Positions 1 to 20,335 of a DNA stretch of 54,785 nucleotides are shown here, in pieces. The translations under genes were made by a program, and so were the position numbers. The notes under the pieces were generated by a model, which was not told the DNA's origin, made no database searches, and worked only from the letters and a program-made list of their open reading frames with translations. Source of the stretch: Basidiobolus meristosporus CBS 931.73 (Eukaryota > Fungi > Basidiobolomycota); contig MCFE01000598.1 in assembly GCA_002104905.1 (NCBI GenBank), positions 1-54,785 on the forward strand, in the 5' to 3' direction. How positions within the stretch are numbered: the stretch's first letter is position 1; the number at the start of each line of letters is the position of its first letter.

Positions 1-453
1 TCTATACAACAAACACTCGGTGTGTATTGTAGATTTGCTTGTGTCGGTCAATACATGCTTAACCAGTGGTGAGTACAATTTTATCTTCCTTTTTAGCAAC
101 AATACTCTTGATGGTAGTTGCAGCTATGGGTTCAGTGTTTCCCGAGGCATTGACTGTTGAGCGCGCAATGGTAACTCTCTCAAACCGCAAGTCAAAATGA
201 AGCGAAAAACTACGTTTAGCTTCTTTGCCTTTAGTATTGGCCTCTGTTCTCCTGGAAAGAACCTTCTTGTACAGAGTTCTGTTCTCTACAAAGCTTCACC
301 AGTCCCTCGAGTCTGAATTCCATAGGTGTGTAAAAAAATGGCACTCAGACAAAGGATGGTGTCAGGATTGAATATATCACAGGCAATAAGAAGGGTATTC
401 ACATCCACGTGTATCAATATTGACTATATTTGTTTCCAAGAGTCACAACAAGT

Positions 454-586
454 ATATTTCGCAACACAAATTAGAGAACCAGGGAGAACTAGGGAAATAT
501 TGAATATTTATGGGCTAAGGTACATTATAAATATATTTCGCAAACAGATTAGAGAACATGAATTATTTATAAGCTAAGATACATTG
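454..586. repeat. Imperfect direct duplication in an AT-rich stretch
   Basis: atatttcgcaacacaaattagagaac (~454) recurs as atatttcgcaaacagattagagaac (~533). gaatatttatgggctaaggtacatt (~502) recurs as gaattatttataagctaagatacatt (~560). Confidence 0.55.
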
Positions 587-626
587 ATTAGGATGCGCAT
601 TGGGGGTGTTCATTGAGCGGAGCACA

Positions 627-2485
627 TCACTCAGACACTAAATTGCGCTTCTGCATCCTGATGTATTTAATTCCCAAGCTGAACAGGAATAGCAATCCAG
701 ACATTCCAATGGCGATGTAAAAGATGGTACGTAATACATGAACATACACCCCCATCACAGCTAGTCGTTCTTCTGTGGGTAGGGTGTCCATGAATTGGAA
801 GCTATTCGTCGCCTCCTGGATTGGGATATTATAGCTTAACTTGGACAGTCCAGTGACCAACTGGTTGTTGTATATTGAGCCGCATATGGCGATTCCCAAC
901 ACTCCACCAACCGAGCGGAAGAAGGATGACATAGTTGTCACTACACCCATATCTTTCGGAGACACCTCTGATTGGCCCGCCAAGATCAATGTTTGAATGC
1001 AACAACCAGCTCCAGCTCCCACGATGATCAAGAAGCCAATCTGCTCGCCATGGCCAGTATTGGCATTCCAAATGGTCAGCAATCCTACACCCACCGTCAT
1101 GACTGCTGATCCGACCCAACACCAGACGACGATCACCCCGGTCTTCGAGATGAAGAATCCGGAGACAATACTGAATAGTGAAGCGGAAAGCAGCATGGGC
1201 AGCATCTGGAGTCCGGAAGTGGTGGCAGAATCCCCACGGACAACCTGGAAGTACATTGGGACGTAGTATACCAATCCAAAGAATGCCATACCAAAGAAGA
1301 ACTGGGCGATGAAGGAGAACAACGGATTACGCATGCCAAACAACCGACAAGGGATGATTGGCTCGGCTGCAAATCGGTACTCCACTACGATAAATGCTAT
1401 CAAGAGTGCTCCCGAAACACAGTAAAGAGATATGATTCTTGGTGAGCTCCAGGGGTAATCTGCACCTCCCCATTCGGTGGGCAATAAGAGAGTGATGATG
1501 CATGCCAGAAGCAGCGCCGTCCCGAGGAAATCGATTCTCCGGATCTTTTCCTTGAAAGAGCCTGTCGGCGTAGGAAGTTGCAGGAACAGAGAGACGATCA
1601 CTACGGTAAGCGCACCGATTGGCAGGTTGACGTAGAAAGACCACCTACAGCGACAAGTGTTAGTCAGCCATCTACCAAGAGTGAGGGAAGGGGATCAAGG
1701 TTACCTCCAAGTAGTGTCATCCGTAAAGATGCCACCGAGTAATGGGCCCAGAACAGATGCGATACCGAACTGTAGATTCAACGAGGTTTAGAACCAGCGA
1801 TATAATCAACTATCAACCGCTTCCTTGACTTACTGTAGCGCCGATGAATCCTTGGTACTTTCCGCGCTCTCGGAGCGGGACGATCTCGGTGATAATAATG
1901 AAGACCATACCCTCGACTGAGAAAAGAGCGAGTTAGATACGCGTCAAAAGAGTTCGGGAGGGATAAATACTCACTGCCTCCACCTCCGATTCCTGAGATC
2001 GCTCTAGACACAATCAGCATGGTCATGTTCTTGGAAGCTCCACATAGCGCGCTGCCCACCTCAAAGATGACAATGGCGAAGAGGAATACTATTTTACGTC
2101 CAAAGATATCCGAAAACTAGTTCACCTGGTTAGTACCATGAAATATGTTGCCCTGTATGAGGGAACTCACCTTTCCGTAGAGAGGCTGGCAAGCCGTAGC
2201 AGTCAACATGTAGGCAGTAGCCACCCAAGCAACCTGGTTTATTGCGCCAAAATCTGATGCGATTTTGGGCAGAGCGGTGGCCACGATTGTCTGATCAAGA
2301 CCAGCCAAAAGGACGGCCATTGCAAGGCCCAGAAAGACCAATAGCAGCTTTCCAAAAGGTAGAATCGCTGGATCATCCACCTCCAGCTCTGGTTTAGATG
2401 CGTTCTTTTCTAAATCCTCCAGCTTCAAGGGGCCTGAAGGAGCTGATTGCTTCTCAGCTAAGATGGCAGTAGGTTCGACCCGCAT
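627..2485 (-). CDS. MFS drug:H+ antiporter (DHA2/14-TMS family), 5 exons, about 540 aa
   Basis: GT-AG introns at 2117-2170, 1917-1974, 1770-1833 and 1645-1704 join the ORFs into a 1623-nt frame. Motifs include LDQTIVATALPKI, YGKFSDIFGRK, RERGKYQG, GPLLGGIFTD and WRWSFYVNLPIG. Confidence 0.93.
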
Positions 2486-3737
2486 TGTATGTTAGAGCTA
2501 TCAATCCAGATCACCTGTTTATATAGGAATGCGCAAGAGAACGGAAGGTATGTGCACTATTCCGCAACTCTAACAAGCCACGGAAATTCGGCTCCACTCA
2601 GATATACCAAGGTTGGAACAAGCCCAGTATACCAAACTTACACCCAAGCATTCCTTCCACCAGAAGAGAGTTTGTTTCTGCACCACTGGGACATAAGAAG
2701 GAGCGACTCTCTTCTGATTAGAGAATTCTATGGACTAGATCTAGATGTATTCTCGGCAATATCCCTCATTTGGCAGGAATTCTATCTGGGTTGGAAAATA
2801 ATAGGAATGTCTTGATTGGGCTCCAGTTGCTGCGAATCTCAGATCGAGGCCAATCAGAAACATTCCCAACCATGAATTGACCAACTCCTGCTTGACAGTT
2901 TTGACGTCATTATCTAGATTTGGTACCGGAATATCGGGTGGGGTTGAAAAGCGGAACAACGGATCGTGGTTTAAACTTGGGGGTAGGAGCTATTGATGAA
3001 TGAGGATGATGGCGAAACATGGCACTGACAGATATGAACTAAACAAACAAAAGTCATGTGAAATCGAGCGTTTAGGCTTTTCGGTCATCAAGTTCATCCA
3101 GCCACCGTAACGTTGGTGTTGCCAGAAGGCGGCTCGGGAAATCCTACCAGACGATATTATATGCTGGGGTGATAATTCGGCAGCGTACATGGAGACCCCT
3201 AGAAGTAACGGGTCATGAGTTTTGTATATCTAGTGGATTTACGGTTGAAGAGAGTTGATGGAACTTTCTCTGGTAGTTTACGGATTGTTGCTATGTGTAT
3301 TTTAATTGGAGTGAAAGTCATGATATACGTGTTGCACTTGAGCGATGTAAACTATAGCTTTGGCTGGTAGCCCATGGATGATAACCTAGAGCTCGTCGAT
3401 GTGAGCCCTGGAAATGATCAGTGGCGAATACATGCTTCTGAAAGACAATGCTTTATGCCAGAGAATGTGGTATAGTCTCTCCATTAGTTTTGAGAATTCT
3501 GAGTCGTTACTATATTCCTTGATTTATAGTAAACGTATGATTTGATTGTAATGCTATAGCAATAACTTTATCGCCTAGATCTTGGTCTATGATCCCAACT
3601 ATTCACTGAACTAATACTTTTTTGTATTTACTTGAATTATTATGACCAAAATGTCTGACTTCTAGAGAATTACATTCCACAAAGTTGCCCAAAAGACTCC
3701 AAACTCTGTTCTCTTGCTCTTTAACATATTTATAAAG

Positions 3738-4069
3738 TGTTGTAAAAGTTCGTATTTCCACCTAAATATTCACCTAACTTAGTCACTTAGATCATTACCT
3801 TCATATCCTAGAGAATACTGACCAAATTCCTTGTCGGGATTTACTTAGAATATTTACCCAGAACATGAAAATTAGATAAGTTGTCCAAACAGCCCCAAAC
3901 TTTGCACGCATGTTCTTGGGACCTTCCTTAACCTATTCTACGTGTTTGTTATGCCAAGACCAGGTAAAAGTATAAATACTACTTTTACATTCAATAAATC
4001 ATAAAGTGATAACCACATAATCTACTTGTTCTCCCAATCGCTTTCAATATCTCCAAGACTCTTACAACA
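3738..4069 (+). mobile_element. Ty1/copia solo LTR with 5-bp TSD
   Basis: Begins TGTTG and ends CAACA, flanked on both sides by TAAAG. The same family follows the copia RNase H remnant at 20336. Confidence 0.85.
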
Positions 4070-4221
4070 TAAAGAAAATTTGAAATCTAATTAATTATTA
4101 AATGAAAGCCTGCTGTAGTCTAGTCTATTTAGTTTGTAAGATATTGGTTGACTCTTAGAGTTAGTGAAGGCCTGGAAGCTATCAGCATTTTCTGACTTCT
4201 CCAAAAAAACTCCAGACTTTG

Positions 4222-4565
4222 TGTTGTAAGAGTTTTGGAGATATTGGAAGTGATTGGGAGAACAAGTAGCTTATGTGATGTTCACCTAACAACTTATTAA
4301 ATTTAAAAGAGATACTCATAAGTTTACTTTGTCTTGCTGAAAAACTGCAAAGAATATACTTAGGAAGGTCCCAAGAGCATGTGTGCAGAGTTTGGGGCTG
4401 TTTGGATAACTCTGGGATATTTCATTTCCTGGGTACCTAATGTTTTGGTGAAATATTTTAGTAAATCCCAACAAGGGATTTGGCCGGATTCTTGAAGATT
4501 TGTAGACAATGATCCAGGTGACCAAGTTAGGTAAATATATAGGTGCAATTACAACATTTGCAACA
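4222..4565 (-). mobile_element. Ty1/copia solo LTR (reverse) with 5-bp TSD
   Basis: Reverse-complement homolog of 3738-4069 with TGTTG...CAACA ends, flanked by CTTTG on both sides. Confidence 0.8.
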
Positions 4566-4779
4566 CTTTGCATGCAGTTAACTGAGACCTTCAATACTTT
4601 CGAGCTCTTGTGCAGCCATAAGTACATTGTTTGAACTCAACAAAGACCTAGTGAATACCATGCAATTCCGCTTGTTCTCAAATCACTTTCAGTGCTCCCA
4701 AGAATTGTACAACAGTTGGGACCCTACAGAATACAAATGCACTTGTCCCATCAAGACCATATAACCTCACATATATTGC

Positions 4780-5123
4780 TTATATTTTGTACTTACACCT
4801 AAATACTCTCCAGACTTGGTCACCTAGATCATTATCTACAAATCCCAGAGAGTTCTGACCAAGCTTCTTGTTGGGATTTGCAAAGAATATATTATCACCA
4901 AAACATCAGGTACCCAAAACATGAGATTTCTTAAAGTTGTCTAAACAGCACTAAACTTTGCATGCATCTTTTTGGGACATTCCTGCACATATTCCTCATG
5001 TTTGTTTTGCTAAGATTATGTAAAAGTAAAATACTGCTGTTATTTTCTATAAATCAATGGGTGAAACTACTTGATCTACTTGTTCACCCAAATACTTCAA
5101 ATATCTCCAAGACTCTTATATCA
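4780..5123 (+). mobile_element. Degenerate copia LTR copy
   Basis: Shares cacctaaatact..., ttgttgggattt, aaactttgcatgcat and atatctccaagactctta with the LTR family. Boundaries are approximate. Confidence 0.65.
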
Positions 5124-5743
5124 TATACCACCTTTGCACTATATAAAGTACTGAGTAAAAGCTGTAAAGTCTGCTTATTCTCTTAATCACTTCTAATATC
5201 TCCATAATTCATGCAATAGCTGCATCTAAGCAAATCTAGAAGATTTGAAAATACCAATAGGTCTCTGGCTCAGTATACTGTTAGATAGCTTACATAGCAA
5301 ACAGATGATAATATGTAATCTAGGCTTTGTCTTAATGTGTACTTGAGATATTTGAAGTGCTGATATAATTGGCTCATATAGACCAATGCTTCTAAGATAC
5401 TTGAGGATTAAGTTCAGTGTACTACCAAGTTATGAGTGACTTATTGACATTTGAGCTTGTATGATTTTTGCCAGTTTTTATATTACTGAGGCTATGGAAG
5501 CTATGTAGTACTGAAGGTATGCCATAATGCCCAAGATGTGTGCACTACTTTGTGCTATTTTTTTTGAAATGGTTATTTGATTTGATATACAAAGCTCTAC
5601 TCCCAGGATATATTCTGTACTACAGCTTGATGAAACATGTGATTACTTTATGACCCTACTAGCTCTTGAGGTCACTGTCAGTACTACTGAGTATTTTAAA
5701 TCAATATAAATATGTGGCATAGTAGAGATCTACTATTTGATGT

Positions 5744-6090
5744 TGTTGAAAAAGTTTGGAATTCCACTTAAATACTCACCTAACTTAGTCACTTAGATCA
5801 TTAGCTACAAACTTTATAGAATAATTGACCAAGCTCCTTGATTGGATTTACTGAGAATACTTTAGCCAAAATATCAGGTACCCAGAACACAAAAGTTAGA
5901 TAAGTTGCTCAAACAGCCCCAAACTTTACACACATGTTCTTGGGACCTTCATAAGCCTACTTTGCGTGTTAGTTATGTTAAGACCATGTAAAAGTTTAAA
6001 TACTACTTTTACATTCAATAAATCATTTAGTGAAAACCATATAATCTACTACTCCCAATCACTTCCAATATCTCCAAGACTCTTACAGCA
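5744..6090 (+). mobile_element. Ty1/copia solo LTR with 5-bp TSD
   Basis: TGTTG...CAGCA, homologous to 3738-4069, flanked by GATGT on both sides (5739-5743 and 6091-6095). Confidence 0.8.
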
Positions 6091-6104
6091 GATGTAAGTA
6101 CCTA

Positions 6105-6800
6105 GTATTGTCTGAGTTTCAGAGATATTAGAAGTGATTGACAGCATAAGTATATTTTGTGGTTTTCACTTAATAATTTGTTAAATATAGAGGTAGTTTA
6201 TATACTTTTTGATGGTCTTGGCAAAAAAACCCGTAAAATAGGTTTAGGAAAGTTTCAAGATCATGTGTGAAGAGTTTGGGGCTGCACACAGCTGAGCTGT
6301 TTGGAACCATCGATGTAGCTTCTTACTATAATCTTTACAAAGCTTACCTAACTATACAAGTACTCTATTTCAACTCAATAAGATAATAAGTGAATTACAT
6401 GCGATTTGAGTTCGCCAATACACTTGGTTCAAGTTGTGACGCTACCTTTGGCCCTTGAGACCAGTTGTCAGAGTTCTTGAGGTATTTGAGGTGACTGCGA
6501 GAACAAGTAGATTATCATTTATTATTTAATGAATCTACAAGTGAAGTGGTTACTTTAACATGATCTTGACAGCACCAGCACGTGAAGTAATGTTTAATAA
6601 GGTCCCAATAACATGTGCGTAAAGTTAGGAGGCCTTTGGACGACTTTGACAATTCTCATTTTCTGGGAACCTGATATTTTGGTAAAATATTCCTAGTGAA
6701 TTCCAATAAGGAATTTGAACAAGACATTGTAAGATTCAAAGAATATGATCTAAGTAACTAAGTTAATAGAACATTTAAGAGTAATTACGAAATTTGAAAT
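6105..6800 (-). mobile_element. Two fragmentary reverse copia LTR copies
   Basis: gagatattagaagtgattg...agtttggggctg (about 6110-6290) and gagaacaagtagattat...gtaactaagtta (about 6470-6780) match the reverse LTR consensus. Confidence 0.6.
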
Positions 6801-7077
6801 AACCTCTAGGCCTTTACTTGGATGATTTCTTAAGTAAACGATTCATAACTTGGCAGTAAGTTAAACAGAATCCTAAGGTATATGAACTTTCCGTTGTCGT
6901 ATTCCTAACCCTAAATCGCAGAGAACCCATGCTGCTTGAAATAGTAGTTACTTCAAACTAGACTAATCTAAAGATAGTAAGGCATGGTTTGCGAAAAATA
7001 AACTGAAAATGAGCCGAAACTATTGATTGGGTTTTATTGGGTTCAAATGCAAATTAATATAAGGTAGCTATTTACTT

Positions 7078-8895
7078 CTAGATGGCTTGACTAAATCCAC
7101 CATACTTCACCTTCCTGAGAGTAGGATCAAATAATTTACATACATTTCGTAGGAAGATGGTGCCCAAATAGTCACTTAGTACCACCAACTCTCCCTCTAG
7201 CAAAACCTTGTCATCTCTAGTGACTGGAGACCCGGAAAATTCCACGATCCCCTCTTCTTTCATCTCCTTCAGCTCGACATAAAACTCATCCGGGAGCAGT
7301 TGTGCCAACTCTTTGGTGATTACAACCTTTCCTTGGCAAGCAACATCCAAAATGGCCTTTTTGATGATCAAATCCTCCCTAGTCATCTCATGGCCCTTGA
7401 TGAGAGGGAGCTCGCCATTCTCAACTCTCTTGGTGTAATCCTTGACATTCTTCTCATTTTGGGCATAGCCATATTTGGCGTCACTGATGGCGGACATACC
7501 CAAACCGACAAGAAGCTGGGTTTTCTTGGCCACATAACCCATGAAGTTTCTGTGTAAGGTACCGTTCTGCTTGCCAATGAAAAGCTGATCTGTGGGTAGG
7601 GCGAAATGGTCCATACCAACATCCCTATAACCCATATCGGCAAATAGCTTCTTGCCTAACTCGTAAAGAGCGCGCTTATCGGTCTTAGAGGGCAGGTGAT
7701 GCTCGGTAAAGTTTCTCTGGCGAGGATTTACCCACGGGACATGCGCATAGCTGTAGTAGGCGATGCGGTCTGGCTGCAGGGAGCCGACCATGGTAATAGT
7801 CTGCTGCGTAGTCTCCATGGTTTGGTTTGGAAGGCCATAGATCAAGTCTAAAAATGGAATGAGTCAAAACGGCCCCACACGTCCACAGGATACAGAAACA
7901 TACCAAAGCAGATGGAGGTGTAGCCTATCCTCCGCGCCATGTTCATGACATTGTCCACGGTTTCGTAGGTTTGGACTCTGTTGATGATTTGCTGCACATC
8001 CGGATCAAAGTCTTGAATCCCCAGGCTAAGCTTCCTGAATCCAAGATCATACAATATCTGCAAATGCTCTTCACTTGTGCTGTTTGGATGTGCCTCGAAA
8101 CTGAACTCGTGCGAGGGATGAAGAGAGCAACCCTCCAGCAACCCATTGATCAACCGTTGCAAATTGCTAGGCGAGAAGAAGGTTGGCGTGCCCCCGCCCA
8201 AGTAAATCTCACAGATGTTGGGCTTTCCCGAGGTGGAAATCAAATAGTCTCTATAGATGGCCCATTCCTTGAGAACCGTATCGATGTAGGGGTCTTCGAC
8301 CTTATCATGATACTTGGTGATCACCTTCGTGCAGGCGCAGTAGTGGCACAGTCTGGTGATGGATTGAGCTTAGGGTCAGTACAATATTGCCACCACAATG
8401 CTTTGATACTACTTACTGCTCGCAGTACGGCAAATGTACATAAATGGCCATTCCAATGTCATCGTTTGTCTCGTCGAAGCATTTCTTGACAACCTTCAGC
8501 CAGTCGTCTTGTGTAGGCGCGGTTTCTGTTTTGTTCCAGAAGGGGACAGGTGGATAACTGGTGTATCGGGGTGCGGGAACGTCGTATTTACACACCAGAT
8601 CCTCGATGTCGGCCAAGCTGTCCAAGACTGACTTCTTGAGCTTTCTTTCTGCTTCTAGTGATCTGGCAGGCTTATGCTTTTTGATCTTCGAGCCCTCAGT
8701 AGTTTGTTCGGAGGTCTTAGCATCAGCATTGTCCTTGACCTCTGGAAATTGGGTAGAAACGCTCTTGGGGCATTGGGTGGAATCCTTCTCCTTTGCGGTG
8801 AATAGTCGCGGGATGAGATAGGATAGGACTACGGTGCCTAGAAGTATGTAGAACGATATGGTGAACGTTGAAGTACGGCCTACAGTTTCATCCAT
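7078..8895 (-). CDS. hemN: Oxygen-independent coproporphyrinogen III oxidase (radical SAM HemN) with N-terminal transmembrane extension, 3 exons, about 565 aa
   Basis: Introns 8353-8416 and 7848-7903 (GT-AG) give a 1698-nt frame. Motifs: KYDVPAPRYTSYP, IYVHLPYCEQLCHYCAC (CX3CX2CXC), YLGGGTPT, DLIYGLPNQT, YSYAHVPW, GMDHFA, LHRNFMGY and GLGMSAISD. Confidence 0.92.
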
Positions 8896-9230
8896 GACAG
8901 TTAGTAGAGATTTGCTGGTAAAAGCAATGTATCCGGGGAGGAAGGTTTTATCTACACTGGTCGCCACCAATTTGTATTAGTCAACCACCGGAAAAGCTCA
9001 GTCTAGATTGTCGATTTGATTCCAGACTACCAACAACTTCTATGTACACCAATAAGCACTCGGAGAGTCGTTGCCTCGACTATGATTAAGTAATCGTGAT
9101 ACTCGCAATTGATGGTATATATACATATTGTCGGGGCTCCAATTCTTCGGATTGTAGCCTATTTTAGATATTTGGTTCCGGATACCTATAAATGCCATCC
9201 TTCTCCGGGCCACCTTAAATAAATGGGATT

Positions 9231-9270
9231 AAAAGGCATTAAAAGGCATTAAAAGGCATCAAAAGGCATT
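9231..9270. repeat. 10-bp tandem repeat (AAAAGGCATT)x4 upstream of hemN
   Basis: aaaaggcatt aaaaggcatt aaaaggcatc aaaaggcatt read directly from the sequence. Confidence 0.9.
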
Positions 9271-10196
9271 ATATTGATTTCCTAAGATGATACTAACCTT
9301 TGGGTTTGAGATTCGTCCCCAAATCTCATCAACCAGTTGTCCCTCGCACGACTTGTATTAAATGATAGCACACTTAGATGAACGATTGCTCTCTACTATG
9401 CAAATCTAGGGTTAGGGTTCGCTAAAATGGCTGCTTACTTTTTGGACTTTAATTAATTGATTTCTGCATTGACGCTATATCCATGATTTGCATCAGCTAC
9501 TGTTTCCTGAGGGTGATATCATAAAACACCTACAGGTTTTCAGGGATGTTGGACGATAGATGGTTGGCAATTTGGTTGTATTCCCGTCGATATATTATGA
9601 CCATTCGCCATCCTCAGACCCCTCCTATTTAACTCCGACTTATCCTTATGTTCTTCTTCACCCACCTAATATACACTCCCTATTACTAGCGATTACGCCT
9701 GCATGCTAGGTATCTTATTCCTCTGCTTAATCCCTGCAGTTGGAGTCCTCTCAGTGCTATTTGTACAATGCTCTTTGGCCTTTACCCAGCAATATTCCAC
9801 ATCTTCAAATGCTAAAAACGAAAAGCCCGATCTTACCTCGGACCATCCCTTGGTCTGGCATTCACGAAATCATCCATCCATTTGGTTGAAACGACGTAAA
9901 TCCCGTAACAGCTGAGTGATGGATACCACCGAACAAGAGTATTCTTGGGACGTGGTGATGTACATTTGAAGAACTGCCTAAACCCCAGAGTATTCTAATT
10001 TTTGTAAAGAAACTTGTATATACCAAGCGTAGTAAACTGACTTAACCCCGGCAACATCTTCGACCCCTAACTAATAATATTGTTTGGTACGCTCACTATA
10101 TTCGGCTTATCTGTACGTGACAATGGTGACTCATAGACTACTACGTCATGATATTGGCTTATATAAACCAGTTAGATGTTCGGGTTTTAAATCATT

Positions 10197-11045
10197 ATGG
10201 AGTCTCCTAAGGTGCCCACAAACGCGAGTGACGATACTCGTAATGCTTCAGTTAAGCAAGTACATGATATAGCCGCAAGGGGATTTGAGTTGGACACAAA
10301 TGCATATGAAACAGCACGTCCCAGCTATCCTCCTGAGGCGATCGAACTTCTGCGAACGAAGCTGGGCCTTAAATCTGGCGAGTCACGTGTTTTGGACCTA
10401 GGAGCGGGGACGGGAATATTCACTCGTCTGCTGCAGCCATTCAATTATGACTTGGTGGCTGTAGAACCAGCGGCCAACATGAGAGCCAAGTTCTCTCAGG
10501 TGCTTCCTGACGTTCCAATCTTGGAGGGCACAGCCTGGAAAATTCCAGTGGAAGATAGCTCGTTGGATGTTGTCTTTGTTGCTCAGGCCTTTCACTGGTT
10601 CAGTGATGTCGCTGCCATCCAAGAGTTCAGCAGAGTGTTGAAACCAAACGGTTACCTAGCTCTGATATGGAACTTGGAAGACAGAGCTCAAGCCAAATGG
10701 GTTGGGGCCATCAGAGATATTTATGAAAAGCATGAACGTGGCTCACCCCAGTACCGGTTGGGCTTGTGGAGAAAAGTATTCGAGACCGAAGAATATCGCC
10801 GCCTCTTTGACCCACCCACTGAGGCCCATTTGCAACGTGAGGTATTGTCAGATAAACAGACCATTTGGACCCGTATATCCAGCAAGAGCTATGTCGCATC
10901 GCTGGATGCCGAGCAGAAGGAAACCTTGAAGCAACAAATCTTGGACACGCTCAACTCTGCGGAGGACATGGAGATAGACAAGGAGTCGGGTCTTGTCAAA
11001 TTCCCGTACGTTACTGACATCGTGTGGTGTCAAAAACGAGCTTAA
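10197..11045 (+). CDS. Class I SAM-dependent methyltransferase (Methyltransf_11-like), copy A, intronless
   Basis: 282-aa ORF with VLDLGAGTG (motif I), VAVEP, AQAFHWF and YETARPSYP. Confidence 0.9.
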   Translation: MESPKVPTNASDDTRNASVKQVHDIAARGFELDTNAYETARPSYPPEAIELLRTKLGLKSGESRVLDLGAGTGIFTRLLQPFNYDLVAVEPAANMRAKFSQVLPDVPILEGTAWKIPVEDSSLDVVFVAQAFHWFSDVAAIQEFSRVLKPNGYLALIWNLEDRAQAKWVGAIRDIYEKHERGSPQYRLGLWRKVFETEEYRRLFDPPTEAHLQREVLSDKQTIWTRISSKSYVASLDAEQKETLKQQILDTLNSAEDMEIDKESGLVKFPYVTDIVWCQKRA

Positions 11046-11151
11046 CAACAAGCATGGAAGTAAAAGGGCAATCGGATTCGTCTATGGGATTCTTTTATTA
11101 TTGTCAAATCAAGGCTTAATAAAGTCTACAGTGTAGATATACGAATGGTGT

Positions 11152-11296
11152 CTACCACCAAGTGTATTTGCTTACCTCGGAGGAGTTTGGATTAGCTATT
11201 CTTAGTCCTGATGTAGTGAGCTACTATCGATCCTAGTAAGGAAATATTCCAGTCCCACAGCGGCGACACCAGTGACGGCTGTTAACGGTAAGATAG
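11152..11296 (-). pseudogene. Decayed paralog of the 73-aa membrane microprotein
   Basis: Retains LPLTAVTGVAAVGLEYFLT and the terminal KYTWW* but has an internal deletion, an in-frame stop and no matching start. Confidence 0.7.
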
Positions 11297-11601
11297 CTGT
11301 TTATAGTGTTTATAGCAGTAGCTGAAACAACGTGGAATATGGAGGAGCTGAATAACAGTTACCTCTAAATAGGTTTATTATTCAGCAACACTCTTAAAGA
11401 GTCGTGAGAGCTGATATAAACACTCGGATACTCTTGGAATGATACTGTGTGTCTACCGAATTTATTCCACCTCCTTTTCAACAAATCATCATCAGGCTAT
11501 TATGTCACGCTCGTACGCGGATATAGATCAGGTGGGAAAATCATTGCGTTTCAAGAGATACCTGCGAACATGAGTGAAGATCTCGTCATGATGAATCAAC
11601 C

Positions 11602-12393
11602 ATGAATGTGCATGAAACCGCTGCAAAGGGCTTTGAGTTGGACACAAATGCATATGAAACAGCACGTCCCAGCTATCCTCCTGAGGCGATCGAACTTCTG
11701 CGAACGAAGCTGGGCCTTAAATCTGGCGAGTCACGTGTTTTGGACCTAGGAGCGGGGACGGGAATATTCACTCGTCTGCTGCAGCCATTCAATTATGACT
11801 TGGTGGCTGTAGAACCAGCGGCCAACATGAGAGCCAAGTTCTCTCAGGTGCTTCCTGACGTTCCAATCTTGGAGGGCACAGCCTGGAAAATTCCAGTGGA
11901 AGATAGCTCGTTGGATGTTGTCTTTGTTGCTCAGGCCTTTCACTGGTTCAGTGATGTCGCTGCCATCCAAGAGTTCAGCAGAGTGTTGAAACCAAACGGT
12001 TACCTAGCTCTGATATGGAACTTGGAAGACAGAGCTCAAGCCAAATGGGTTGGGGCCATCAGAGATATTTATGAAAAGCATGAACGTGGCTCACCCCAGT
12101 ACCGGTTGGGCTTGTGGAGAAAAGTATTCGAGACCGAAGAATATCGCCGCCTCTTTGACCCACCCACTGAAGCCCATTTGCAACGTGAGGTATTGTCAGA
12201 TAAACAGACCATTTGGACCCGTATATCCAGCAAGAGCTATGTCGCATCGCTGGATGCCAAGCAGAAGGAAACCTTGAAGCAACAAATCTTGGACACGCTC
12301 AACTCTGCGGAGGACATGGAGATAGACAAGGAGTCAGGTCTTGTCAAATTCCCGTACGTTACTGACATCGTGTGGTGTCAAAAACGAGCTTAA
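11602..12393 (+). CDS. Class I SAM-dependent methyltransferase, copy B
   Basis: 263-aa ORF that differs from copy A by 3 nt over about 800 bp, at an offset of 1348 bp. Confidence 0.9.
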   Translation: MNVHETAAKGFELDTNAYETARPSYPPEAIELLRTKLGLKSGESRVLDLGAGTGIFTRLLQPFNYDLVAVEPAANMRAKFSQVLPDVPILEGTAWKIPVEDSSLDVVFVAQAFHWFSDVAAIQEFSRVLKPNGYLALIWNLEDRAQAKWVGAIRDIYEKHERGSPQYRLGLWRKVFETEEYRRLFDPPTEAHLQREVLSDKQTIWTRISSKSYVASLDAKQKETLKQQILDTLNSAEDMEIDKESGLVKFPYVTDIVWCQKRA

Positions 12394-12499
12394 CAACAAG
12401 CATGGAAGTAAAAGGGCAATCGGATTCGTCTATGAGGTTCTTTTATTATTTACAAGTTAAGCTCTAATTAAGTCTACAGTGTAGATTTTTGTATGGTGT

Positions 12500-12721
12500 C
12501 TACCACCAAGTGTATTCGCCAATTTTGGAGTTGGGATTATATGCGGTTGTTGTCCTCATCACAGGGTTCGATTGATACCTGGCGGCGTATTCCTCGTTGG
12601 TAATGCTGGTAAGGAAATATCCCAGTCCCACAGCGGCGACACCAGTGACGGCTGTTAGCGGTAAGATTACTTGGGTTCCTAAGGACTTGGTGACCGGGCT
12701 GCGAAGTAAAAGTGTGGACAT
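12500..12721 (-). CDS. 73-aa single-pass membrane microprotein, hypothetical
   Basis: MSTLLLRSPVTKSLGTQVILPLTAVTGVAAVGLGYFLTS...EYTWW*. It has an acid-free N-terminus, a hydrophobic segment and a decayed paralog at 11152-11296. Confidence 0.6.
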   Translation of the reverse strand: MSTLLLRSPVTKSLGTQVILPLTAVTGVAAVGLGYFLTSITNEEYAARYQSNPVMRTTTAYNPNSKIGEYTWW

Positions 12722-13264
12722 TTCAAAGATGCTCCAACTGCGGGCAACTGTAAGATATTTATACATGCTGGATCTCTAAATTATCGGCCAGCCAACAATA
12801 GACTCTGTAGGAAGTTTGGATCTAGGTTAGGCCCAATTGGCCAAGTCTAGACTATATAGTATCCGAAGATCAAGGTGATAAGGAATTGGGCTAGGGTTTT
12901 TTAGGGTTTTCCACTCCAATTGATTTGGTTTTTGAAGGTGATTGATCTGTTTCCGTCATGCGAGCACTGCTACTGGGGATGGATCTGGACGCTGATTATC
13001 CATGTATCAGCGATTAGTCCCATCGATAAACGGGAAAATGTTCCGAGTGTTATAGGTGCTTTACTTATTCAGCATTATTTTATTCTGGATCGCTTCACAT
13101 TTCTGACTCTTGGTGGAATTCTTTGTTTGGTGTTTTCAACAGTAGCTATCAAGGAATGGTGGTCTTCATGCTGGCATATGTTGGTAATGATATATCAATG
13201 GGCGACTTTTTTCAAAATATTGCCGCCATTTTTTCTTGGGTTCTATCACCCAAAACTCATTACC

Positions 13265-13510
13265 AAGAGAGAATGTTTGTATTTCTGTATAGCAAGGAAT
13301 GCTACATACAAGCACTCTGCAGCCAGGCTGTTGAAAAATATACAAAACAAAAGGCAATGTAGCAACCATCTTTTTAAACGTGAGTATACCTGTTGCATAC
13401 TGAGTGTTGTTAGAGTTTTGGAGATGTTGGAAGTGATTGGGAGAACAAGTAGATTGTGTGGTTTTCACCTTATGTTTATTGGATGTAGAGATGATATTTA
13501 AGCTTTTAAA
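13265..13510 (-). mobile_element. Copia LTR end plus adjoining internal remnant
   Basis: 13405-13500 matches the reverse LTR. 13265-13440 is the reverse complement of about 17510-17690. Confidence 0.65.
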
Positions 13511-14244
13511 ACATGTAGAATGTGTTAGCAACACTTGCTTCAGCTTGAGATTTCGTTATTCAACAAATCTATAGTAATATATTTCATACTTCTCTTATAA
13601 CCACATAGTACGCTGCTCTTTTTCTCTGCATTTCCCTTAAGCCCCCCCCCCCCGAAAGCCTCGCGTACAGTATACCGTCAGTCAAATAGTGAGCCAAGTT
13701 CTGAGTCTCTTCAATGCTGATACACTAAAAACGAACAATGTATCTGATTTGGACAATATCTTGCCGATTGACGAACGGACTAGCCAAGGAATCATAAACA
13801 GTCTGGATATAGAAACTATTCATCTGCTTTCTTGGCATAAATTAGGGGAATGGTTTCCTCTAAACGGCCAAAGCTTATCACCAAGTTTGCACTGATGATA
13901 TCCATGTTTGTACAACACGAGGAATCAGATTATATGGAGAATCGATGGATAAATTCGGAGGGCAATGCAGCCTATTGCAGGGATTTTGATTACCTCGGTA
14001 ACAATGCGCAAATGATGATTGAGCCTACCAATCCCGTATCCCAACTAACAATCAAGGCAATGTTTGCCGTGAAATGAATCCCGTTTCCTAACCGAAGCAT
14101 GTGGTTGACAACCAAGTATGGGATTGGATGTGGAGTAAATATAGAAATTAGGGGTTTATTAGTCAGGATATATGGTCAAGTTTACAACACCACTGCGGTG
14201 GTTTAGAGAAGAAAAATTACAACGAGATGAGGGACGCGGGCGAT

Positions 14245-15459
14245 CTAAATCATGATGGACTGGAACCATCTATCCTGAAAGATCTCATCCACGGTGATAC
14301 GCGTGTCAGGGTTGGGGTCCAGCATCTTACGAATTAATGGGAACGCCGCCTCAGGGATGCGTGTGAATGACTCGCCATTCTTGCGGAATTCAAGGTACAT
14401 CTCGTAATTTTTGACCGAGGGTTTAGCCATGTCCCATGGGAACTTCCTGAGGACCATGCAGAGATAGATGATGCCTGCTGACCAGATGTCAGCCTTGGCT
14501 GCGTCGTATGGTCGACCGTCGAACACCTCTGGTGCTATGTATGGATCGGAGCCGGTTAGCTCGCTGGCTTTGGCTCGGTTCCCTTCGCTTAAGGGATCCA
14601 GGAAGATGAAGGCGCACCCGAAGTCAATGATCTTTAAGGTTCCGTTTTCATCCACACAGAGATTCTCAAGTTTAAGATCTCTGTGCGCCACCCCGCGGTG
14701 GTGCAAGTAGGCAAGTCCGCGCATCAACTGGCTGAAGTAAATATCGATCTCCTGCTGAGTCAGCTGGTTCTCCTTGACAACAGTGAACATGTCCTGAGGG
14801 CAGTATTCCATCACCTCGTGGATCTCATTGTTCTCCATGATGACATCCAGAGTCTGGATGACATTTTCATGAACCAGGGAGGCGGTGATGTAAACCTCAT
14901 TGCTGACCCACTCGTAATAGCGGTGCTCGTCTTCGTCAGGCCTCTTGGCACGGAAGCTTTTGACGGCGTATTTCCTGCCTGTGCGTGGACAGTAGGTTTG
15001 TCGAACGCCACCACCGGCTCCACTGCAGATGTCATTGGTGTAATCACCATACAGCTGATTGATGGATGGGGCGTTTCGCTTTCTTAGCGCGTCCAGCAGT
15101 GGCATGTAATCATTGGAGCGGGCCTTGGACTCGTGCTGTGATTTCAGGTGCTTCTTGCGCAGACTGAAGAATCCGAACTTCTTTTGCTGAGTTGATTTGC
15201 GATCCTTCTTGCTATCTCTGAACACAAATCTACTGGGGACTTTATATAGGGAGGACATGCCGGCGGTGAAGCAATCGTCCGAGGGAGTGGTTGTGCTGGT
15301 GTCGAGGTGGGTAGAGCTGTCGCAAGGGCCGGTGGAGTACTGACTGGCCAGACTTTCCTGTGAGTGGTATGGAATGTGGATCCCCTTGTTGGGAGCCTCG
15401 TGGTAGAGATGTAGATGGGAAAGCATTGGATACGAAGCTATCGGCGATTTGGAAGGCAT
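14245..15459 (-). CDS. NPR/HAL-family Ser/Thr protein kinase, copy 1, intronless
   Basis: 404-aa ORF with YAVK, HENVIQTLD, HRDLKLENL, DFG, GSDPYIAPE and DIWSAG. GSxPYIAPE is typical of the Npr1/Hal5/Sat4/Hrk1 family. Confidence 0.9.
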   Translation of the reverse strand: MPSKSPIASYPMLSHLHLYHEAPNKGIHIPYHSQESLASQYSTGPCDSSTHLDTSTTTPSDDCFTAGMSSLYKVPSRFVFRDSKKDRKSTQQKKFGFFSLRKKHLKSQHESKARSNDYMPLLDALRKRNAPSINQLYGDYTNDICSGAGGGVRQTYCPRTGRKYAVKSFRAKRPDEDEHRYYEWVSNEVYITASLVHENVIQTLDVIMENNEIHEVMEYCPQDMFTVVKENQLTQQEIDIYFSQLMRGLAYLHHRGVAHRDLKLENLCVDENGTLKIIDFGCAFIFLDPLSEGNRAKASELTGSDPYIAPEVFDGRPYDAAKADIWSAGIIYLCMVLRKFPWDMAKPSVKNYEMYLEFRKNGESFTRIPEAAFPLIRKMLDPNPDTRITVDEIFQDRWFQSIMI

Positions 15460-15960
15460 TTGGAGTCTCTCTTAGTTCTTCAGTGTTGATTTGAACAGTA
15501 AAGATGGCTCTCACCCAGCGGACCACAAGGACTTTTATACCTCATCCCAATCTATCCATCACACGGTGACGATAACCAATCGAGGTTTAAGTATATTGTC
15601 CGAATATCGGAGAGTGCGTCGGCTAGGAAGATATCCCTCGGCACGGAATGCCATCGGACCCAAGGGAGGGGAGGGATGATGGTAAGCCAGCGCTTGTGCA
15701 ATACATAAGAGTGATAATAATCACCAAAAATGGAAGTGTCCAATTTATCCGCTCCCCAGGATTACCACTGATATCCGACAGAAAGGAATTCCAAGGATTG
15801 ATTCTATTTTTATTCGTGAGTCATATAGCGATGTTGAATGGATGAGCTAATCCACTTCCCGTGGACACGTGTGGGCAATGATGGGTTCGTTGGTTTGGGC
15901 CTAAAAACGCATGCCCATCACTATATCGATACCCATATCACCAACACTAACTGAATACAC

Positions 15961-16021
15961 ATCTATGGGAGTCAAAGGTGCTTGGGAATGAATACATATC
16001 TACGGGAGTTGAAGGTGCTTG
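15961..16021. repeat. 24-bp imperfect direct repeat with 37-bp period upstream of kinase 1
   Basis: atctatgggagtcaaaggtgcttg and atctacgggagttgaaggtgcttg. Confidence 0.75.
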
Positions 16022-17329
16022 AGGCGGTAGTGACCTCAACACTGGCATCGTACAACATCCTCCGGCACCCGGATATTGCATTTCAGCGGACGATGGCTAA
16101 CCATTACAAATAGTGATCAAGCTTCGTGTGACTAGCCTTTGCACCATAGATGGTGTGCCCCAGGGACCAGGATCAAAGGGTTTGGATAAGCAAATAGTCG
16201 CATCATGCAAGGTTGCTATGGAGTTATTATAGCAATGTCGACACCAGGGTTGTCGATGGCTATTTCTACTTGGCCCTCTGACCATGGATGTATGGATCTC
16301 ACTTTGGAATACGGGCATATATCATATACCACGATTGCATGCTCGTGCTAGATTCTTCGATGGTTCCGTAAGTTTAGCATGGTTGGGTCTAGTGGGTAGG
16401 ATGCAGGATGTAGGATGTTTTCGTAATCAAAAAATCGGTTGAGGACCGAAAATTCATCAAAAATTCCAACCTCAATTTCCGCTCCAGGGACCAATCAAAA
16501 CCAGCAGGGTACCATCGTTCATCTCAATCTGTGTCCAAAATTTATCGGTATCAAGTATTCCATATGAGTAAGTGGTTGTCATGCAGTAGCGAGTTGCCCT
16601 GGGAACATGGTGATGAATCAGAACCATTGCGCTTTCACATGTTGGTTTGGTGCATGGAAGTAAGTAGAGCATCATAAAAGTAAGGATGGTTCTGCTTTGT
16701 CCCAGGTTGCTGTGTGCACAGTTTGGGTCTTTCATACATCACAGAATCAGTAAACATCATATGAAATGAATCCAGGCCAAGTAGGTACTTCGGCCTTATA
16801 AATAATTATCGCGCTCAATTGATCAACAAGTTGAGCCGATCTCGATCCATTAATACAATTTACAAGTTGGAATTTCGGCTGGATTATGTTGTGATTAGCT
16901 AGCGAAACAAATGTTTCTACTTCAAGTACCCACATTCTCGAATATTCTCTAGGAAAAATGGTTTCGGAGATTTAGAAATTCGATGAATTAAGGAAATCCT
17001 GGATCTACCAACTAGCAAATCTGTTCTGAAGATCCGAAACCTTGAACACTAACTCTTGGGACTTCGCTCAAATATTCACATCATCAATCGATGACTTGAA
17101 AATACCTCGAAAACTATACCATTTTTCCCTCACAAACATTTCCAAATCTCATGACTATCTGGCAATTGCGTTTAGGGAATTCCCACCTTTTACCATGGTG
17201 AAGAATATTTTAAATTTCTTACATACACCTGGACATTTACATTTGTTGTAAATGTCGTATTTGCGCCGAAATAGTTCCATAATTCATCAAGTTGCTTAGG
17301 TGATAGACTATGAACTTCACTATTTCCTG

Positions 17330-18875
17330 CCCGAACTCTCTGTCGGGATTTACTTCAAACATTTTCACCAAAATACCAGATACCCAGTACATAGATTTCT
17401 TTTCAGTTGTACAAGAGACTCCAAACATTGCGCACAAGCGTTTGGGACCTTTCTAGGAAAGACAGATGTACCACTTTGACCATCAAAAAATCATCAAGCA
17501 AAAACCATCTAGTCGCAATGTACTCCCAATCACTTTCAGCATCTGCAAAGCACTAACAACACTCAGTATGGACTAGGCATACACACATTCAAAAGGCACA
17601 TAGTTGCATTGCTTTTGGTCTTGTACATTTATCAGCAGCCTAGCTAGGGAGTGCTAATATGCAGCATTCCTTGATATACAGAACTAAACATATCATAATG
17701 TTATATCCAAGATGACTACAACACAATTCATTTAGTCTACAAGCCCCAATATTTCCCAACTCGACTATCTTACAGGAATTTCATAAGAAATATCCATGAG
17801 AATGTAAGTGTTGTAGGTTCTATAGTGACACTTAAGTACTAACCTAACTTAGTCAAGTATATCATGTTGTAAGAGTCTTGAAGATACTGGAAGTGATTGG
17901 CAGAACAAGTAGATTATGAAGTTTTCATTTGATGGCTTTTGAATGTAAAGGTAGTGTTTATACTTTTACATAGTCTTGGCATAGCAAACATGTAGAATAG
18001 GTTTAGGAAGGTCCCAAGAGCATGTGTGCAGCATTTGGGGCTGTTTGGCCAACTGATCTAATTTCATGTTCTGGGTACATGATATTTTGGTGAATATTGT
18101 TGTAAAAATTTAGAATTCCACCTAAATATTCACCTAACTTAGTCACTTAGATCATTAACTTCAAATCCTAGAGAATGCTGACCAAATTCCTTGTTGGGAT
18201 TTACTTAGAATATTTACCCAGAACATGAAAATTCTCAAAGTTGCCCAAACAGCCCCAATCTTTGCACACATGTTCTTGGGATCTTCCTTAATCTACTCTA
18301 CATGTATGTTATGCCAAGACCATGTAAAAGTATAAATGCTACTCTTATACTCAACAAATTATTAAGTGAAAACCACATAATCTGCTTGTTCTCCCAAATC
18401 ACTTCCAATATCTCCAAGACTCTTACAACATTTTCACCAGAGCTTCAGGTACTTGGAGAATGAAAACTCTCAAAGCTATCTCTATAGCCTCAAGCTTGGC
18501 ACACAGGCTTTTAGAGTCCTTCTAGACTAATATCATGTGCTTGTTTTGCCAAGGTCATGTCAGAGTGGAAATACAACATTTACATTCAGTGAATTATTAA
18601 GTAAAATTGGAACAATCTAATGGTTCTCCTAGTCATTGCCATGACTCAAAACCTATCCCAACAAGTCATGGGCCCTGAGCTGTCACTTTCTGAGCTCTCA
18701 CTCTGTTAGCTGCCTACTACTGCTACTAATGATGCCACCAGAGTTTTGTAAATATTGAAATTGATTGCAAGACAAGTAGGTTATGTGGCTTCCACTCAAT
18801 GAACCACTGAATGAAAAGGTGGCTTTTATTCTTTTACATGCTCTAGGCAAGGAAGCCACAAAGAACATGTTTTGA
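17330..18875. mobile_element. Nested cluster of copia LTR fragments
   Basis: Reverse LTR at 17865-18097, forward LTR at 18098-18430 (TGTTG...CAACA), and further fragments at about 17330-17460, 17500-17560 and 18740-18870. Confidence 0.75.
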
Positions 18876-20335
18876 TGACTGTGCAAACAAAACACAACAC
18901 TGATGGTACAATTGAAAGATACAAAGTAAGACCTCTGGCCAAACAATCCTCACAAACAAAAGGACCTAATTGAGTCCTTTGCACCAGTAGCCAAGTTTGA
19001 TTCTATCTGATTAGTATTAGCTATTTCAGCCAAATATACATTTTTTACTCATCAAATGAGTGTGAGAACTGCACTCCTGAGTAGGGAACTTGATGAGTAC
19101 ATGTAAATGAACCAGTCTGATGGGCTTGTTGACTAAGATAACCCTCATTTGGTCTGCAAGCTTAAAAAATTTCTGTATGGTGCATACAATCACCAAGAGC
19201 CTTGAATTGCAAGATAGATTGTTATTTGGAATATTTGAGCTTCCAAAGGGGGTACTGCTGACTATAGTATCTACTATATGCTAGATATAGCAAATCCTGA
19301 TCTAGCAGCTCCTTGTGTGGATGATCTGTTTATAGCTACCAACAACTTGGAAACATTGGAGAGATAAAATTCAACAAATCCAAGGATCTCAAGATGTCCA
19401 ATCTAGGAGAGCTCAGTTACTTCTTAGGGAAGTGGGTCTCCATAGAGAGTAGTACCCAGACTATTACCCTAAGCAAATCTAAGAATATTCAAGATATTCT
19501 AAAGAAATATCCAATGGAATACTGTAAACCAACAGCTACCCCAATGTAGACAAACCTTAGCTTGGCTAAAACACAACCAAACCAAGAGAGCTTGGTGCCA
19601 TCTGAAAGCCCAAAATTCCCTTACTAATCTATGGTCAGCAGCCTAATGTATATAATGCTTGGAACATGTACCTACATCTCATAATCAGTGGGAATTTTCA
19701 GCCAGTATAATAAGAACTATGGAACTGATCATTCTGCAGCAGTTAAGCAGATTCTTAGATACCTAAAAGGTGTTATAAGAGTCTTGGAGATATTGGAAGT
19801 GATTGGGAGGAAAAGTAGATTATGTGGTTTTCACTTAATGATTTATTGAATATACAAGTAGTATTTATACTTTTACATGGTCTTGGCATTACAAACATGT
19901 AGAATAGGTTAAGGAAGGTACCAAGAACATGTGTGCAAAGTTTGGGCTGTTTGGACACTTACCTAATTTTCATGTTCTAGGTAAATATTCTAAGTAAATC
20001 CCAACAAGGAATTTGGTCAGTATTCCCTAGGAATTGAAGATAATGATCCAAGTGACTAAGTTAGGTGGATATTTAGGTGGAATTACAAATTTTTACAACA
20101 GATTAACAATGTGTACAATTAGGTATATATCCAACTTCTCATGCTAGAACTAAGCACATAAATATTAGACATCATTTCATATGTGAAGCTATAGATAGTT
20201 ACTTAGTAAGCTTAGTTTACTCTGCCAAAGATGAAATGATTGCAAACATACTTACAAAACCATTAGCTAGTGACAAATTTAGTATCTTAGGTCAAAAATA
20301 GAACTAGTCAGTATGAACTTTTAATTGAGTGGTAG
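18875..20335 (+). mobile_element. Degenerate Ty1/copia pol remnant (RT and RNase H C-terminus), interrupted by a reverse LTR at 19771-20100
   Basis: Translatable fragments DGTIERYK, FAPVAKFDSI, LVCKLKK, CVDDLFIA (YVDD site), NLGELSYFLG, AVKQILRYLKG, then HARTKHINIRHHF and ANILTKPL. A purine-rich ttgagtggtag directly precedes the LTR start at 20336. Confidence 0.9.

Follow-up and report, generated by a model that had tools for sequence, protein, structure and literature searches.

A domesticated bacterial-type HemN in the fungus Basidiobolus, a candidate for an oxygen-independent step of heme synthesis

The window analyzed here comprises 54,785 nt of Basidiobolus meristosporus CBS 931.73, a member of Basidiobolomycota in the NCBI taxonomy (the complete 54.8-kb scaffold MCFE01000598.1), and harbors a minus-strand gene of three exons and two introns, for which positions 7078-8895 span the stop codon to the ATG exactly (Table 1). 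Splicing yields a coding sequence of 1698 nt and a protein of 565 amino acids; if the introns are left in place, stop codons interrupt the reading frame. The spliced product is residue-for-residue identical to the GenBank protein of B. meristosporus, where the gene is already named HemN, and splicing and expression are predictions that rest on sequence logic and this public gene model. Both introns fall inside conserved motifs, the first interrupting the Q160 codon within the CX3CX2CXC iron-sulfur motif, and the second the D310 codon of the conserved DLIYGLP motif. A first-pass annotation of the locus had described a spliced reading frame with HemN motifs, and indeed all motifs that it quoted are found in the 565-residue product. 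Around the gene lie genes for a protein kinase of eukaryotic type, for two methyltransferases in tandem and for an MFS transporter, the last interrupted by intron sequence.

Table 1. Features of the HemN gene and its surroundings (nucleotide positions in the window; residues of the 565-residue protein).
Feature	Position	Strand	Residues	Details
Exon 1	8417..8895	-	1-159 + 2 nt	ATG at 8895; phase-2 boundary; holds the fungus-specific N-terminal extension, the PRYTSYP region and YVHLPYCE(Q)
Predicted membrane helix (codons)	8800..8868	-	10-32	TFTISFYILLGTVVLSYLIPRLF; sole strongly hydrophobic segment; kept in B. ranarum
Intron 1	8353..8416	-		64 nt, GTAAGT...CAG; TACTGAC branch-like site
Exon 2	7904..8352	-		449 nt; radical SAM core with LCHYCAC, GGGTP, E246, Q273, R285
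Intron 2	7848..7903	-		56 nt, GTATGT...TAG
Exon 3	7078..7847	-		HemN C-terminal half with YSYAHVPW, RNFMGY, I430; stop TAG at 7080..7078
16-residue insertion	~7294-7341	-	~519-534	DDKVLLEGELVVLSDY; C-terminal domain, relative to bacterial HemN
PRYTSYP			109-115
YVHLPYC			152-158
CEQLCHYCAC			158-167	CX3CX2CXC motif
GGGTP			212-216
EAHPNSTSEEHLQILYDLGFRK			246-267
YSYAHVPW			341-348
RNFMGY			409-414
10-bp tandem repeat	9229-9268	+		unit TTAAAAGGCA x4; ~335-375 bp ahead of the HemN ATG
Class I SAM-dependent methyltransferase genes	10197-11045, 11602-12393	+		intron-less tandem duplicates upstream of HemN

Against the HemN equivalog model TIGR00538 the fungal protein scores 388.2 bits (E 4.9e-116, profile positions 6-454 of 454), above the curated cut-off of 324.95 bits, and the homologue of Basidiobolus ranarum reaches 406.8 bits. 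The matches of the individual exons are collinear, with exons 1, 2 and 3 covering profile positions 6-60, 63-205 and 208-454, respectively; exon 3 alone yields 194.6 bits over positions 208-454, and exon 2 matches Pfam PF04055 (E 3e-13). The HemW model TIGR00539, on the other hand, returns 154.7 bits, under its curated cut-off of 205.4 bits, and the protein likewise stays below every cut-off of the HutW/ChuW, HemZ and STM4012 family models.

The residue-level comparison is congruent with the profile scores. C158, C162 and C165 are the [4Fe-4S] ligands and C167 is the fourth cysteine, aligning with C62, C66, C69 and C71 of E. coli HemN, and all four are invariant in an alignment of 70 HemN sequences, of which the 33 invariant columns are kept in the fungal protein without exception. 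The PRYTSYP segment aligns with E. coli residues 21-27. In the E. coli structure 1OLT, Y56, H58, GGGTP, E145, Q172, R184, D209, F310, Q311 and I329 are what we take to be the SAM-site residues. A five-sequence alignment finds both fungi identical to E. coli at Y56, H58, C62, C66, C69, C71, G111-G113, T114 and P115, as well as at E145, Q172, D173, R184, D209, F310 and I329. The equivalent of Q311 is a methionine in the fungi, as it is in 46 of the 50 Bacteroidota-clade rows of the phylogeny described below and in 16 of the 27 rows outside.

Among solved structures, only 1OLT, the HemN of E. coli, matches strongly (residues 12-454, 266 bits), and exon 3 aligns with it as far as residue 454. The AlphaFold model of the fungal protein, which was built on the alignment of 70 sequences and has a mean pLDDT of 89, places 1OLT at rank 1 in Foldseek (E 3.4e-41, TM 0.89 normalised on the target, 454 aligned columns), and the second match (E 6e-10) is ~31 orders of magnitude weaker. 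Compared with E. coli HemN/CgdH, the fungal protein is hence collinear over 12-454 at ~32% identity, shares the fold and conserves CX3CX2CXC, GGGTP and the equivalents of E145, R184, F310 and I329. It differs in the methionine that replaces Q311 and in a separate placement among the HemN clades, and adds an N-terminal extension of ~95 residues (one membrane helix, then a linker predicted as disordered), a 16-residue insertion, and two introns.

In a eukaryote, one would ordinarily expect a HemN-like protein to be RSAD1. Heme chaperones of the HemW (bacteria) and RSAD1 (eukaryotes) type belong to the same radical SAM superfamily and have the same domain order as the fungal HemN, however HemW-like proteins, human RSAD1 included, are N-terminally truncated and devoid of the fourth cysteine (PMC11442138), in agreement with how the first-pass annotation had characterized them. 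Since the N-terminal region and the fourth cysteine are both present in the fungal protein, it is not this usual eukaryotic HemN-like protein, and the earlier proposal of HemN rather than HemW/RSAD1 is borne out by TIGR00538 being passed and TIGR00539 failed, with the PRYTSYP region and the fourth cysteine in place. Profile, motif and structural comparisons identify the gene as a bacterial-type HemN (CgdH), a family member of the radical SAM coproporphyrinogen III dehydrogenases.

Two large searches, which include NCBI, UniRef and EukProt proteins and of which the best 120-150 matches were inspected, were exploited to shed light on the origin of the gene. With exon 3 as query, HMMER was run exhaustively against 1.84 billion cluster representatives and recovered identities of at most ~51% over long stretches, with short fragments reaching up to 60%; the top matches are nearly all ~450 amino acids, the bacterial length, and the named ones are Bacteroidota. 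With the full protein, a word-indexed search of 5.8 billion proteins returned B. ranarum as the sole eukaryote among the best 120 matches (560 amino acids, 78% identity), the remainder being Bacteroidota and unnamed metagenomic proteins at 50-55% identity. The genera among the matches are Marinifilum, Labilibaculum, Halosquirtibacter, Pontibacter, Rufibacter, Fulvivirga, Mucilaginibacter and others. Within the best 120-150 matches of both searches, which cover deposited proteins, eukaryotic HemN is confined to B. meristosporus and B. ranarum. A pattern-based scan of contigs was also run; it favors sequences that share peptides with the query, and the donor affinity is not based on that scan alone.

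The closest relatives are accordingly Bacteroidota HemNs (Marinifilaceae, Prolixibacteraceae, Hymenobacteraceae, Fulvivirgaceae and others), with 51-55% identity across the HemN body and with RNFMGY and YSYAHVPW in common with the fungal protein. Unlike the latter, they are soluble proteins of 452-468 amino acids encoded by intron-less genes.

We then placed the fungal sequences in a tree of 79 rows, containing labelled Bacteroidota, unlabelled representatives, E. coli, Rhizobium, Methylocella and a Bacteroides plasmid HemN with HemW as the outgroup (IQ-TREE, LG+C20+F+G4 PMSF, support as ultrafast bootstrap/SH-aLRT). The HemNs of B. meristosporus and B. ranarum pair with 100/100 support, and the pair is placed beside Marinilabiliales, inside a 10-row clade (99/97) with Marinifilaceae, Prolixibacteraceae (Halosquirtibacter) and a Bacteroidetes MAG. 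This clade in turn belongs to one of 26 rows made up mostly of Cytophagales (100/98), itself inside a 52-row clade (100/95) in which all labelled bacterial rows are Bacteroidota. HemNs from proteobacteria and from the Bacteroides plasmid branch elsewhere. Forcing the 50 bacterial rows of the 52-row clade together without the fungi, a group that was defined only once the tree was known, lowers the log-likelihood by 57.4 units, and the AU test rejects this arrangement (p 0.0036). The stem branch of the fungal pair measures 0.7 substitutions per site, and its sister relation within the 10-row clade receives 93/72.

Searches, maximum-likelihood tree and AU test thus all agree with the horizontal transfer from Bacteroidota that had been suggested from the wording of the motifs, and the phylogeny, one of the checks proposed at that stage, nests the pair in the standard Bacteroidota HemN clade, neither with HemW nor with methyltransferases. 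On this phylogenetic evidence HemN was acquired horizontally from a Bacteroidota bacterium before the split of B. meristosporus and B. ranarum, and the closest sampled HemNs are those of Marinilabiliales and Cytophagales. Considering identities of at most 55%, the stem of 0.7 and the sister support of 93/72, the donor is resolved no finer than to phylum or order. That no sampled bacterium exceeds ~55% identity implies that the actual donor is unsampled or that the transfer is old.

The nesting also bears on vertical inheritance of an ancient eukaryotic or fungal HemN that was lost nearly everywhere else. A few protists and algae are listed with homologues of HemN, and the inspection covered the best 120-150 matches, which would give room for such a history. 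It is nonetheless scarcely credible, as the pair lies three well-supported levels within Bacteroidota, the AU test rejects a position outside, and no further eukaryote is present among the listed top matches of both large searches.

Transfer into this genome would not be an isolated event: 806 HGT candidates, ~5% of the genes, have been reported for B. meristosporus CBS 931.73, some from Bacteroidetes (Tabima et al. 2020, PMC7466969), and these display host-like GC and codon usage and are set among fungal genes (PMC7466969). Whereas the candidates of that survey have a median of zero introns, the HemN gene has two. In the independent assembly of B. ranarum the order of kinase, methyltransferase and HemN recurs, and the HemN introns of that species (67 nt and 58 nt) occupy codons and phases identical to those of B. 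meristosporus, with exon 2 being 449 nt in both, splice sites intact in both, and intron sequences that are unrelated. The same positions in the two species indicate that the introns were gained prior to the species split. The composition fits the host too, with a GC3 of 0.60 for the HemN gene against 0.53-0.74 in neighbouring open reading frames. The kinase, both methyltransferase genes and HemN recur on a second scaffold, MCFE01001080.1, in 11.2 kb of sequence that is 99.36% identical (compared with window positions 1-18895) and encodes an identical HemN protein; this copy is probably the other, uncollapsed haplotype or a very recent segmental duplicate.

Bacterial contamination or an assembly chimera, to which one might be led by the best non-fungal matches all being bacterial, is refuted by the introns and by the gene order common to both species, and its probability is practically nil. 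Two GT-AG introns reside inside conserved motifs of a frame that is broken without splicing, and the gene has eukaryotic neighbours, a counterpart on a second scaffold at 99.4%, a B. ranarum locus with matching neighbours, and host-like GC3.

Selection on the protein was assessed from the same species pair. The reading frames are intact in B. meristosporus (565 amino acids) and B. ranarum (560 amino acids), and the HemN core shows 85% protein identity and a dN of 0.086, while 66% of the 4-fold sites differ, near saturation. A conserved core combined with near-saturated 4-fold sites points to long-standing, strong purifying selection. Thus, it is highly improbable that the gene represents a decaying or silent relic without present function: although its expression is a prediction from sequence, frames and splice sites have stayed intact in two species despite the near-saturated synonymous sites. 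Aggregated, the two introns common with B. ranarum, the host-like GC3, the eukaryotic neighbours, the purifying selection and the added membrane helix considered next substantiate the earlier description of the gene as domesticated.

Residues 1 to ~95 have no bacterial counterpart. This N-terminal extension is far less conserved between the two species than the core, with 46% identity and a dN of 0.48. Among 19-residue Kyte-Doolittle windows, only residues 9-33 exceed 1.6, in both species, and the AlphaFold model has a helix at 10-32, a disordered linker at 33-74 (~45 residues) and a helix at 80-104 leading into the HemN N-terminus. The flanks of helix 10-32 are alike in both species, with acidic residues before it, and PRLF and basic residues after. 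Since no in-frame ATG exists upstream and the next methionine is residue 129, beyond PRYTSYP, the extension must be translated. Its extreme N-terminus is acidic, and it is therefore unlike a matrix-targeting presequence. Judging by how its charges are distributed, the N-terminus is probably a signal anchor, with the catalytic domain remaining in the cytosol; on this basis, both where the anchor resides and how it is oriented are guesses. The 16-residue insertion near the C-terminus is also common to B. ranarum and is modelled, with high confidence, as extra beta strands.

We next considered what such a protein would do. If it functions as E. coli HemN, the reduced [4Fe-4S] cluster would cleave SAM to a 5'-deoxyadenosyl radical, which would abstract hydrogen from the propionates of rings A and B, leading to decarboxylation to vinyl groups and thereby to protoporphyrinogen IX from coproporphyrinogen III without O2. 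HemN depends on a donor of single electrons and on a terminal electron acceptor, and the fungus would have to provide both. Yeast Hem12 and Hem13 are cytosolic and, by analogy, coproporphyrinogen III is made in the fungal cytosol. Helix 10-32 and the disordered linker would probably tether the catalytic domain on the cytosolic face of an organelle membrane, a site that may give access to SAM and to the cytosolic iron-sulfur assembly for cluster loading. The coproporphyrinogen oxidase of eukaryotes, Hem13/CPOX/HemF, catalyzes the identical reaction, from coproporphyrinogen III to protoporphyrinogen IX, however it is an unrelated protein that requires O2. In the oxygen-poor vertebrate gut HemN may keep the coproporphyrinogen step going where an O2-dependent Hem13-type enzyme would stall. 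Basidiobolus both passes through and inhabits vertebrate guts, as a symbiont in amphibians and reptiles (PMC7466969).

It is possible that the transferred HemN-family gene instead encodes another activity: a heme chaperone of the HemW/RSAD1 kind, a radical SAM methyltransferase of class C, or an enzyme for another tetrapyrrole or a secondary metabolite. HemN-like proteins are frequently misannotated and have diverse functions, the fungal stem branch is fairly long (0.7), the protein has gained a membrane anchor and 16 residues near its C-terminus, and Basidiobolus is rich in transferred secondary-metabolism genes. We deem this reading unlikely, given that the HemN equivalog cut-off is passed while those for HemW, HutW/ChuW, HemZ and STM4012 are failed, that the fourth cysteine and the N-terminal region absent in HemW are both retained, and that the protein nests in the standard Bacteroidota HemN clade rather than among methyltransferases and keeps all 33 invariant columns of the 70-sequence alignment. 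We consider it likely, with reasonable confidence, that this is a real nuclear gene, a HemN gained by horizontal transfer from Bacteroidota with a presumed bacterial-type function in the gut.

The first-pass annotation went further and headed the locus as a candidate for oxygen-independent heme synthesis. This stands in part: HemN would remove one late step that requires O2, however protoporphyrinogen oxidase, the next step, is a second such step and is also O2-dependent in eukaryotes, such that HemN alone does not make heme synthesis anaerobic. To a proposal restricted to the coproporphyrinogen step, in which Basidiobolus would set a precedent among fungi, and among opisthokonts at large, by running it without O2, via a membrane-tethered, bacterial-derived radical SAM enzyme that obtains its cluster from the cytosolic iron-sulfur machinery, as an adaptation to the gut, we give roughly an even chance.

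How new this is depends on the level considered. HemN-type genes are known from some algae and homologues are tabulated for a few protists; the Basidiobolus gene is thus not the first of its type in eukaryotes. Large-scale transfer into Basidiobolus, partly from Bacteroidetes, is already published, which limits the surprise. The main text of that survey (PMC7466969) deals with secondary metabolism and makes no mention of HemN, heme or radical SAM; our literature search found no paper with both "Basidiobolus" and "coproporphyrinogen", and nothing relevant in the literature on anaerobic gut fungi or in an HGT survey of 44 early-diverging fungi. In the literature searched, then, we found no report of a fungal HemN.

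If the proposed function is true, it would contradict the textbook view of the coproporphyrinogen step as O2-dependent in all eukaryotes, with an intact and constrained HemN in a culturable fungus of oxygen-poor guts as a concrete and directly testable exception. The locus is also a clean, datable case in which a bacterial iron-sulfur enzyme was domesticated: the gene gained introns, its composition matches the host, and the protein has a new membrane anchor. It would also offer a route to asking how a eukaryotic cytosol provides the electron donor and acceptor of HemN. It would further add to the picture of gut adaptation in Basidiobolus, beside the transferred siderophore genes.

The elements around the gene were inspected as well. 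The tandem methyltransferase genes are ~97% identical in DNA and score under every curated NCBIfam cut-off, and B. ranarum has one copy at the corresponding site. Co-transfer of HemN with these neighbours was considered and rejected: they are generic class I enzymes, unlinked to hemN in Bacteroidota, where 80 loci gave one weak match only for a hemN-methyltransferase linkage. Similarly, the 10-bp repeat was rejected as a conserved regulatory array, as a counterpart is absent upstream of the B. ranarum gene. On a conjugative plasmid of Bacteroides xylanisolvens, pFunn3_1, an MFS transporter gene, hemN and hemG lie in succession, and this hemN falls outside the HemN clade of the fungal gene; the pairing of hemN with hemG on such a plasmid shows that genes for O2-independent late steps of heme synthesis move between Bacteroidota of the gut. 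Finally, long open reading frames at 25817-28298 on the minus strand of the window encode a candidate bacterial-type Tex protein, and may represent another transferred gene on the same scaffold.
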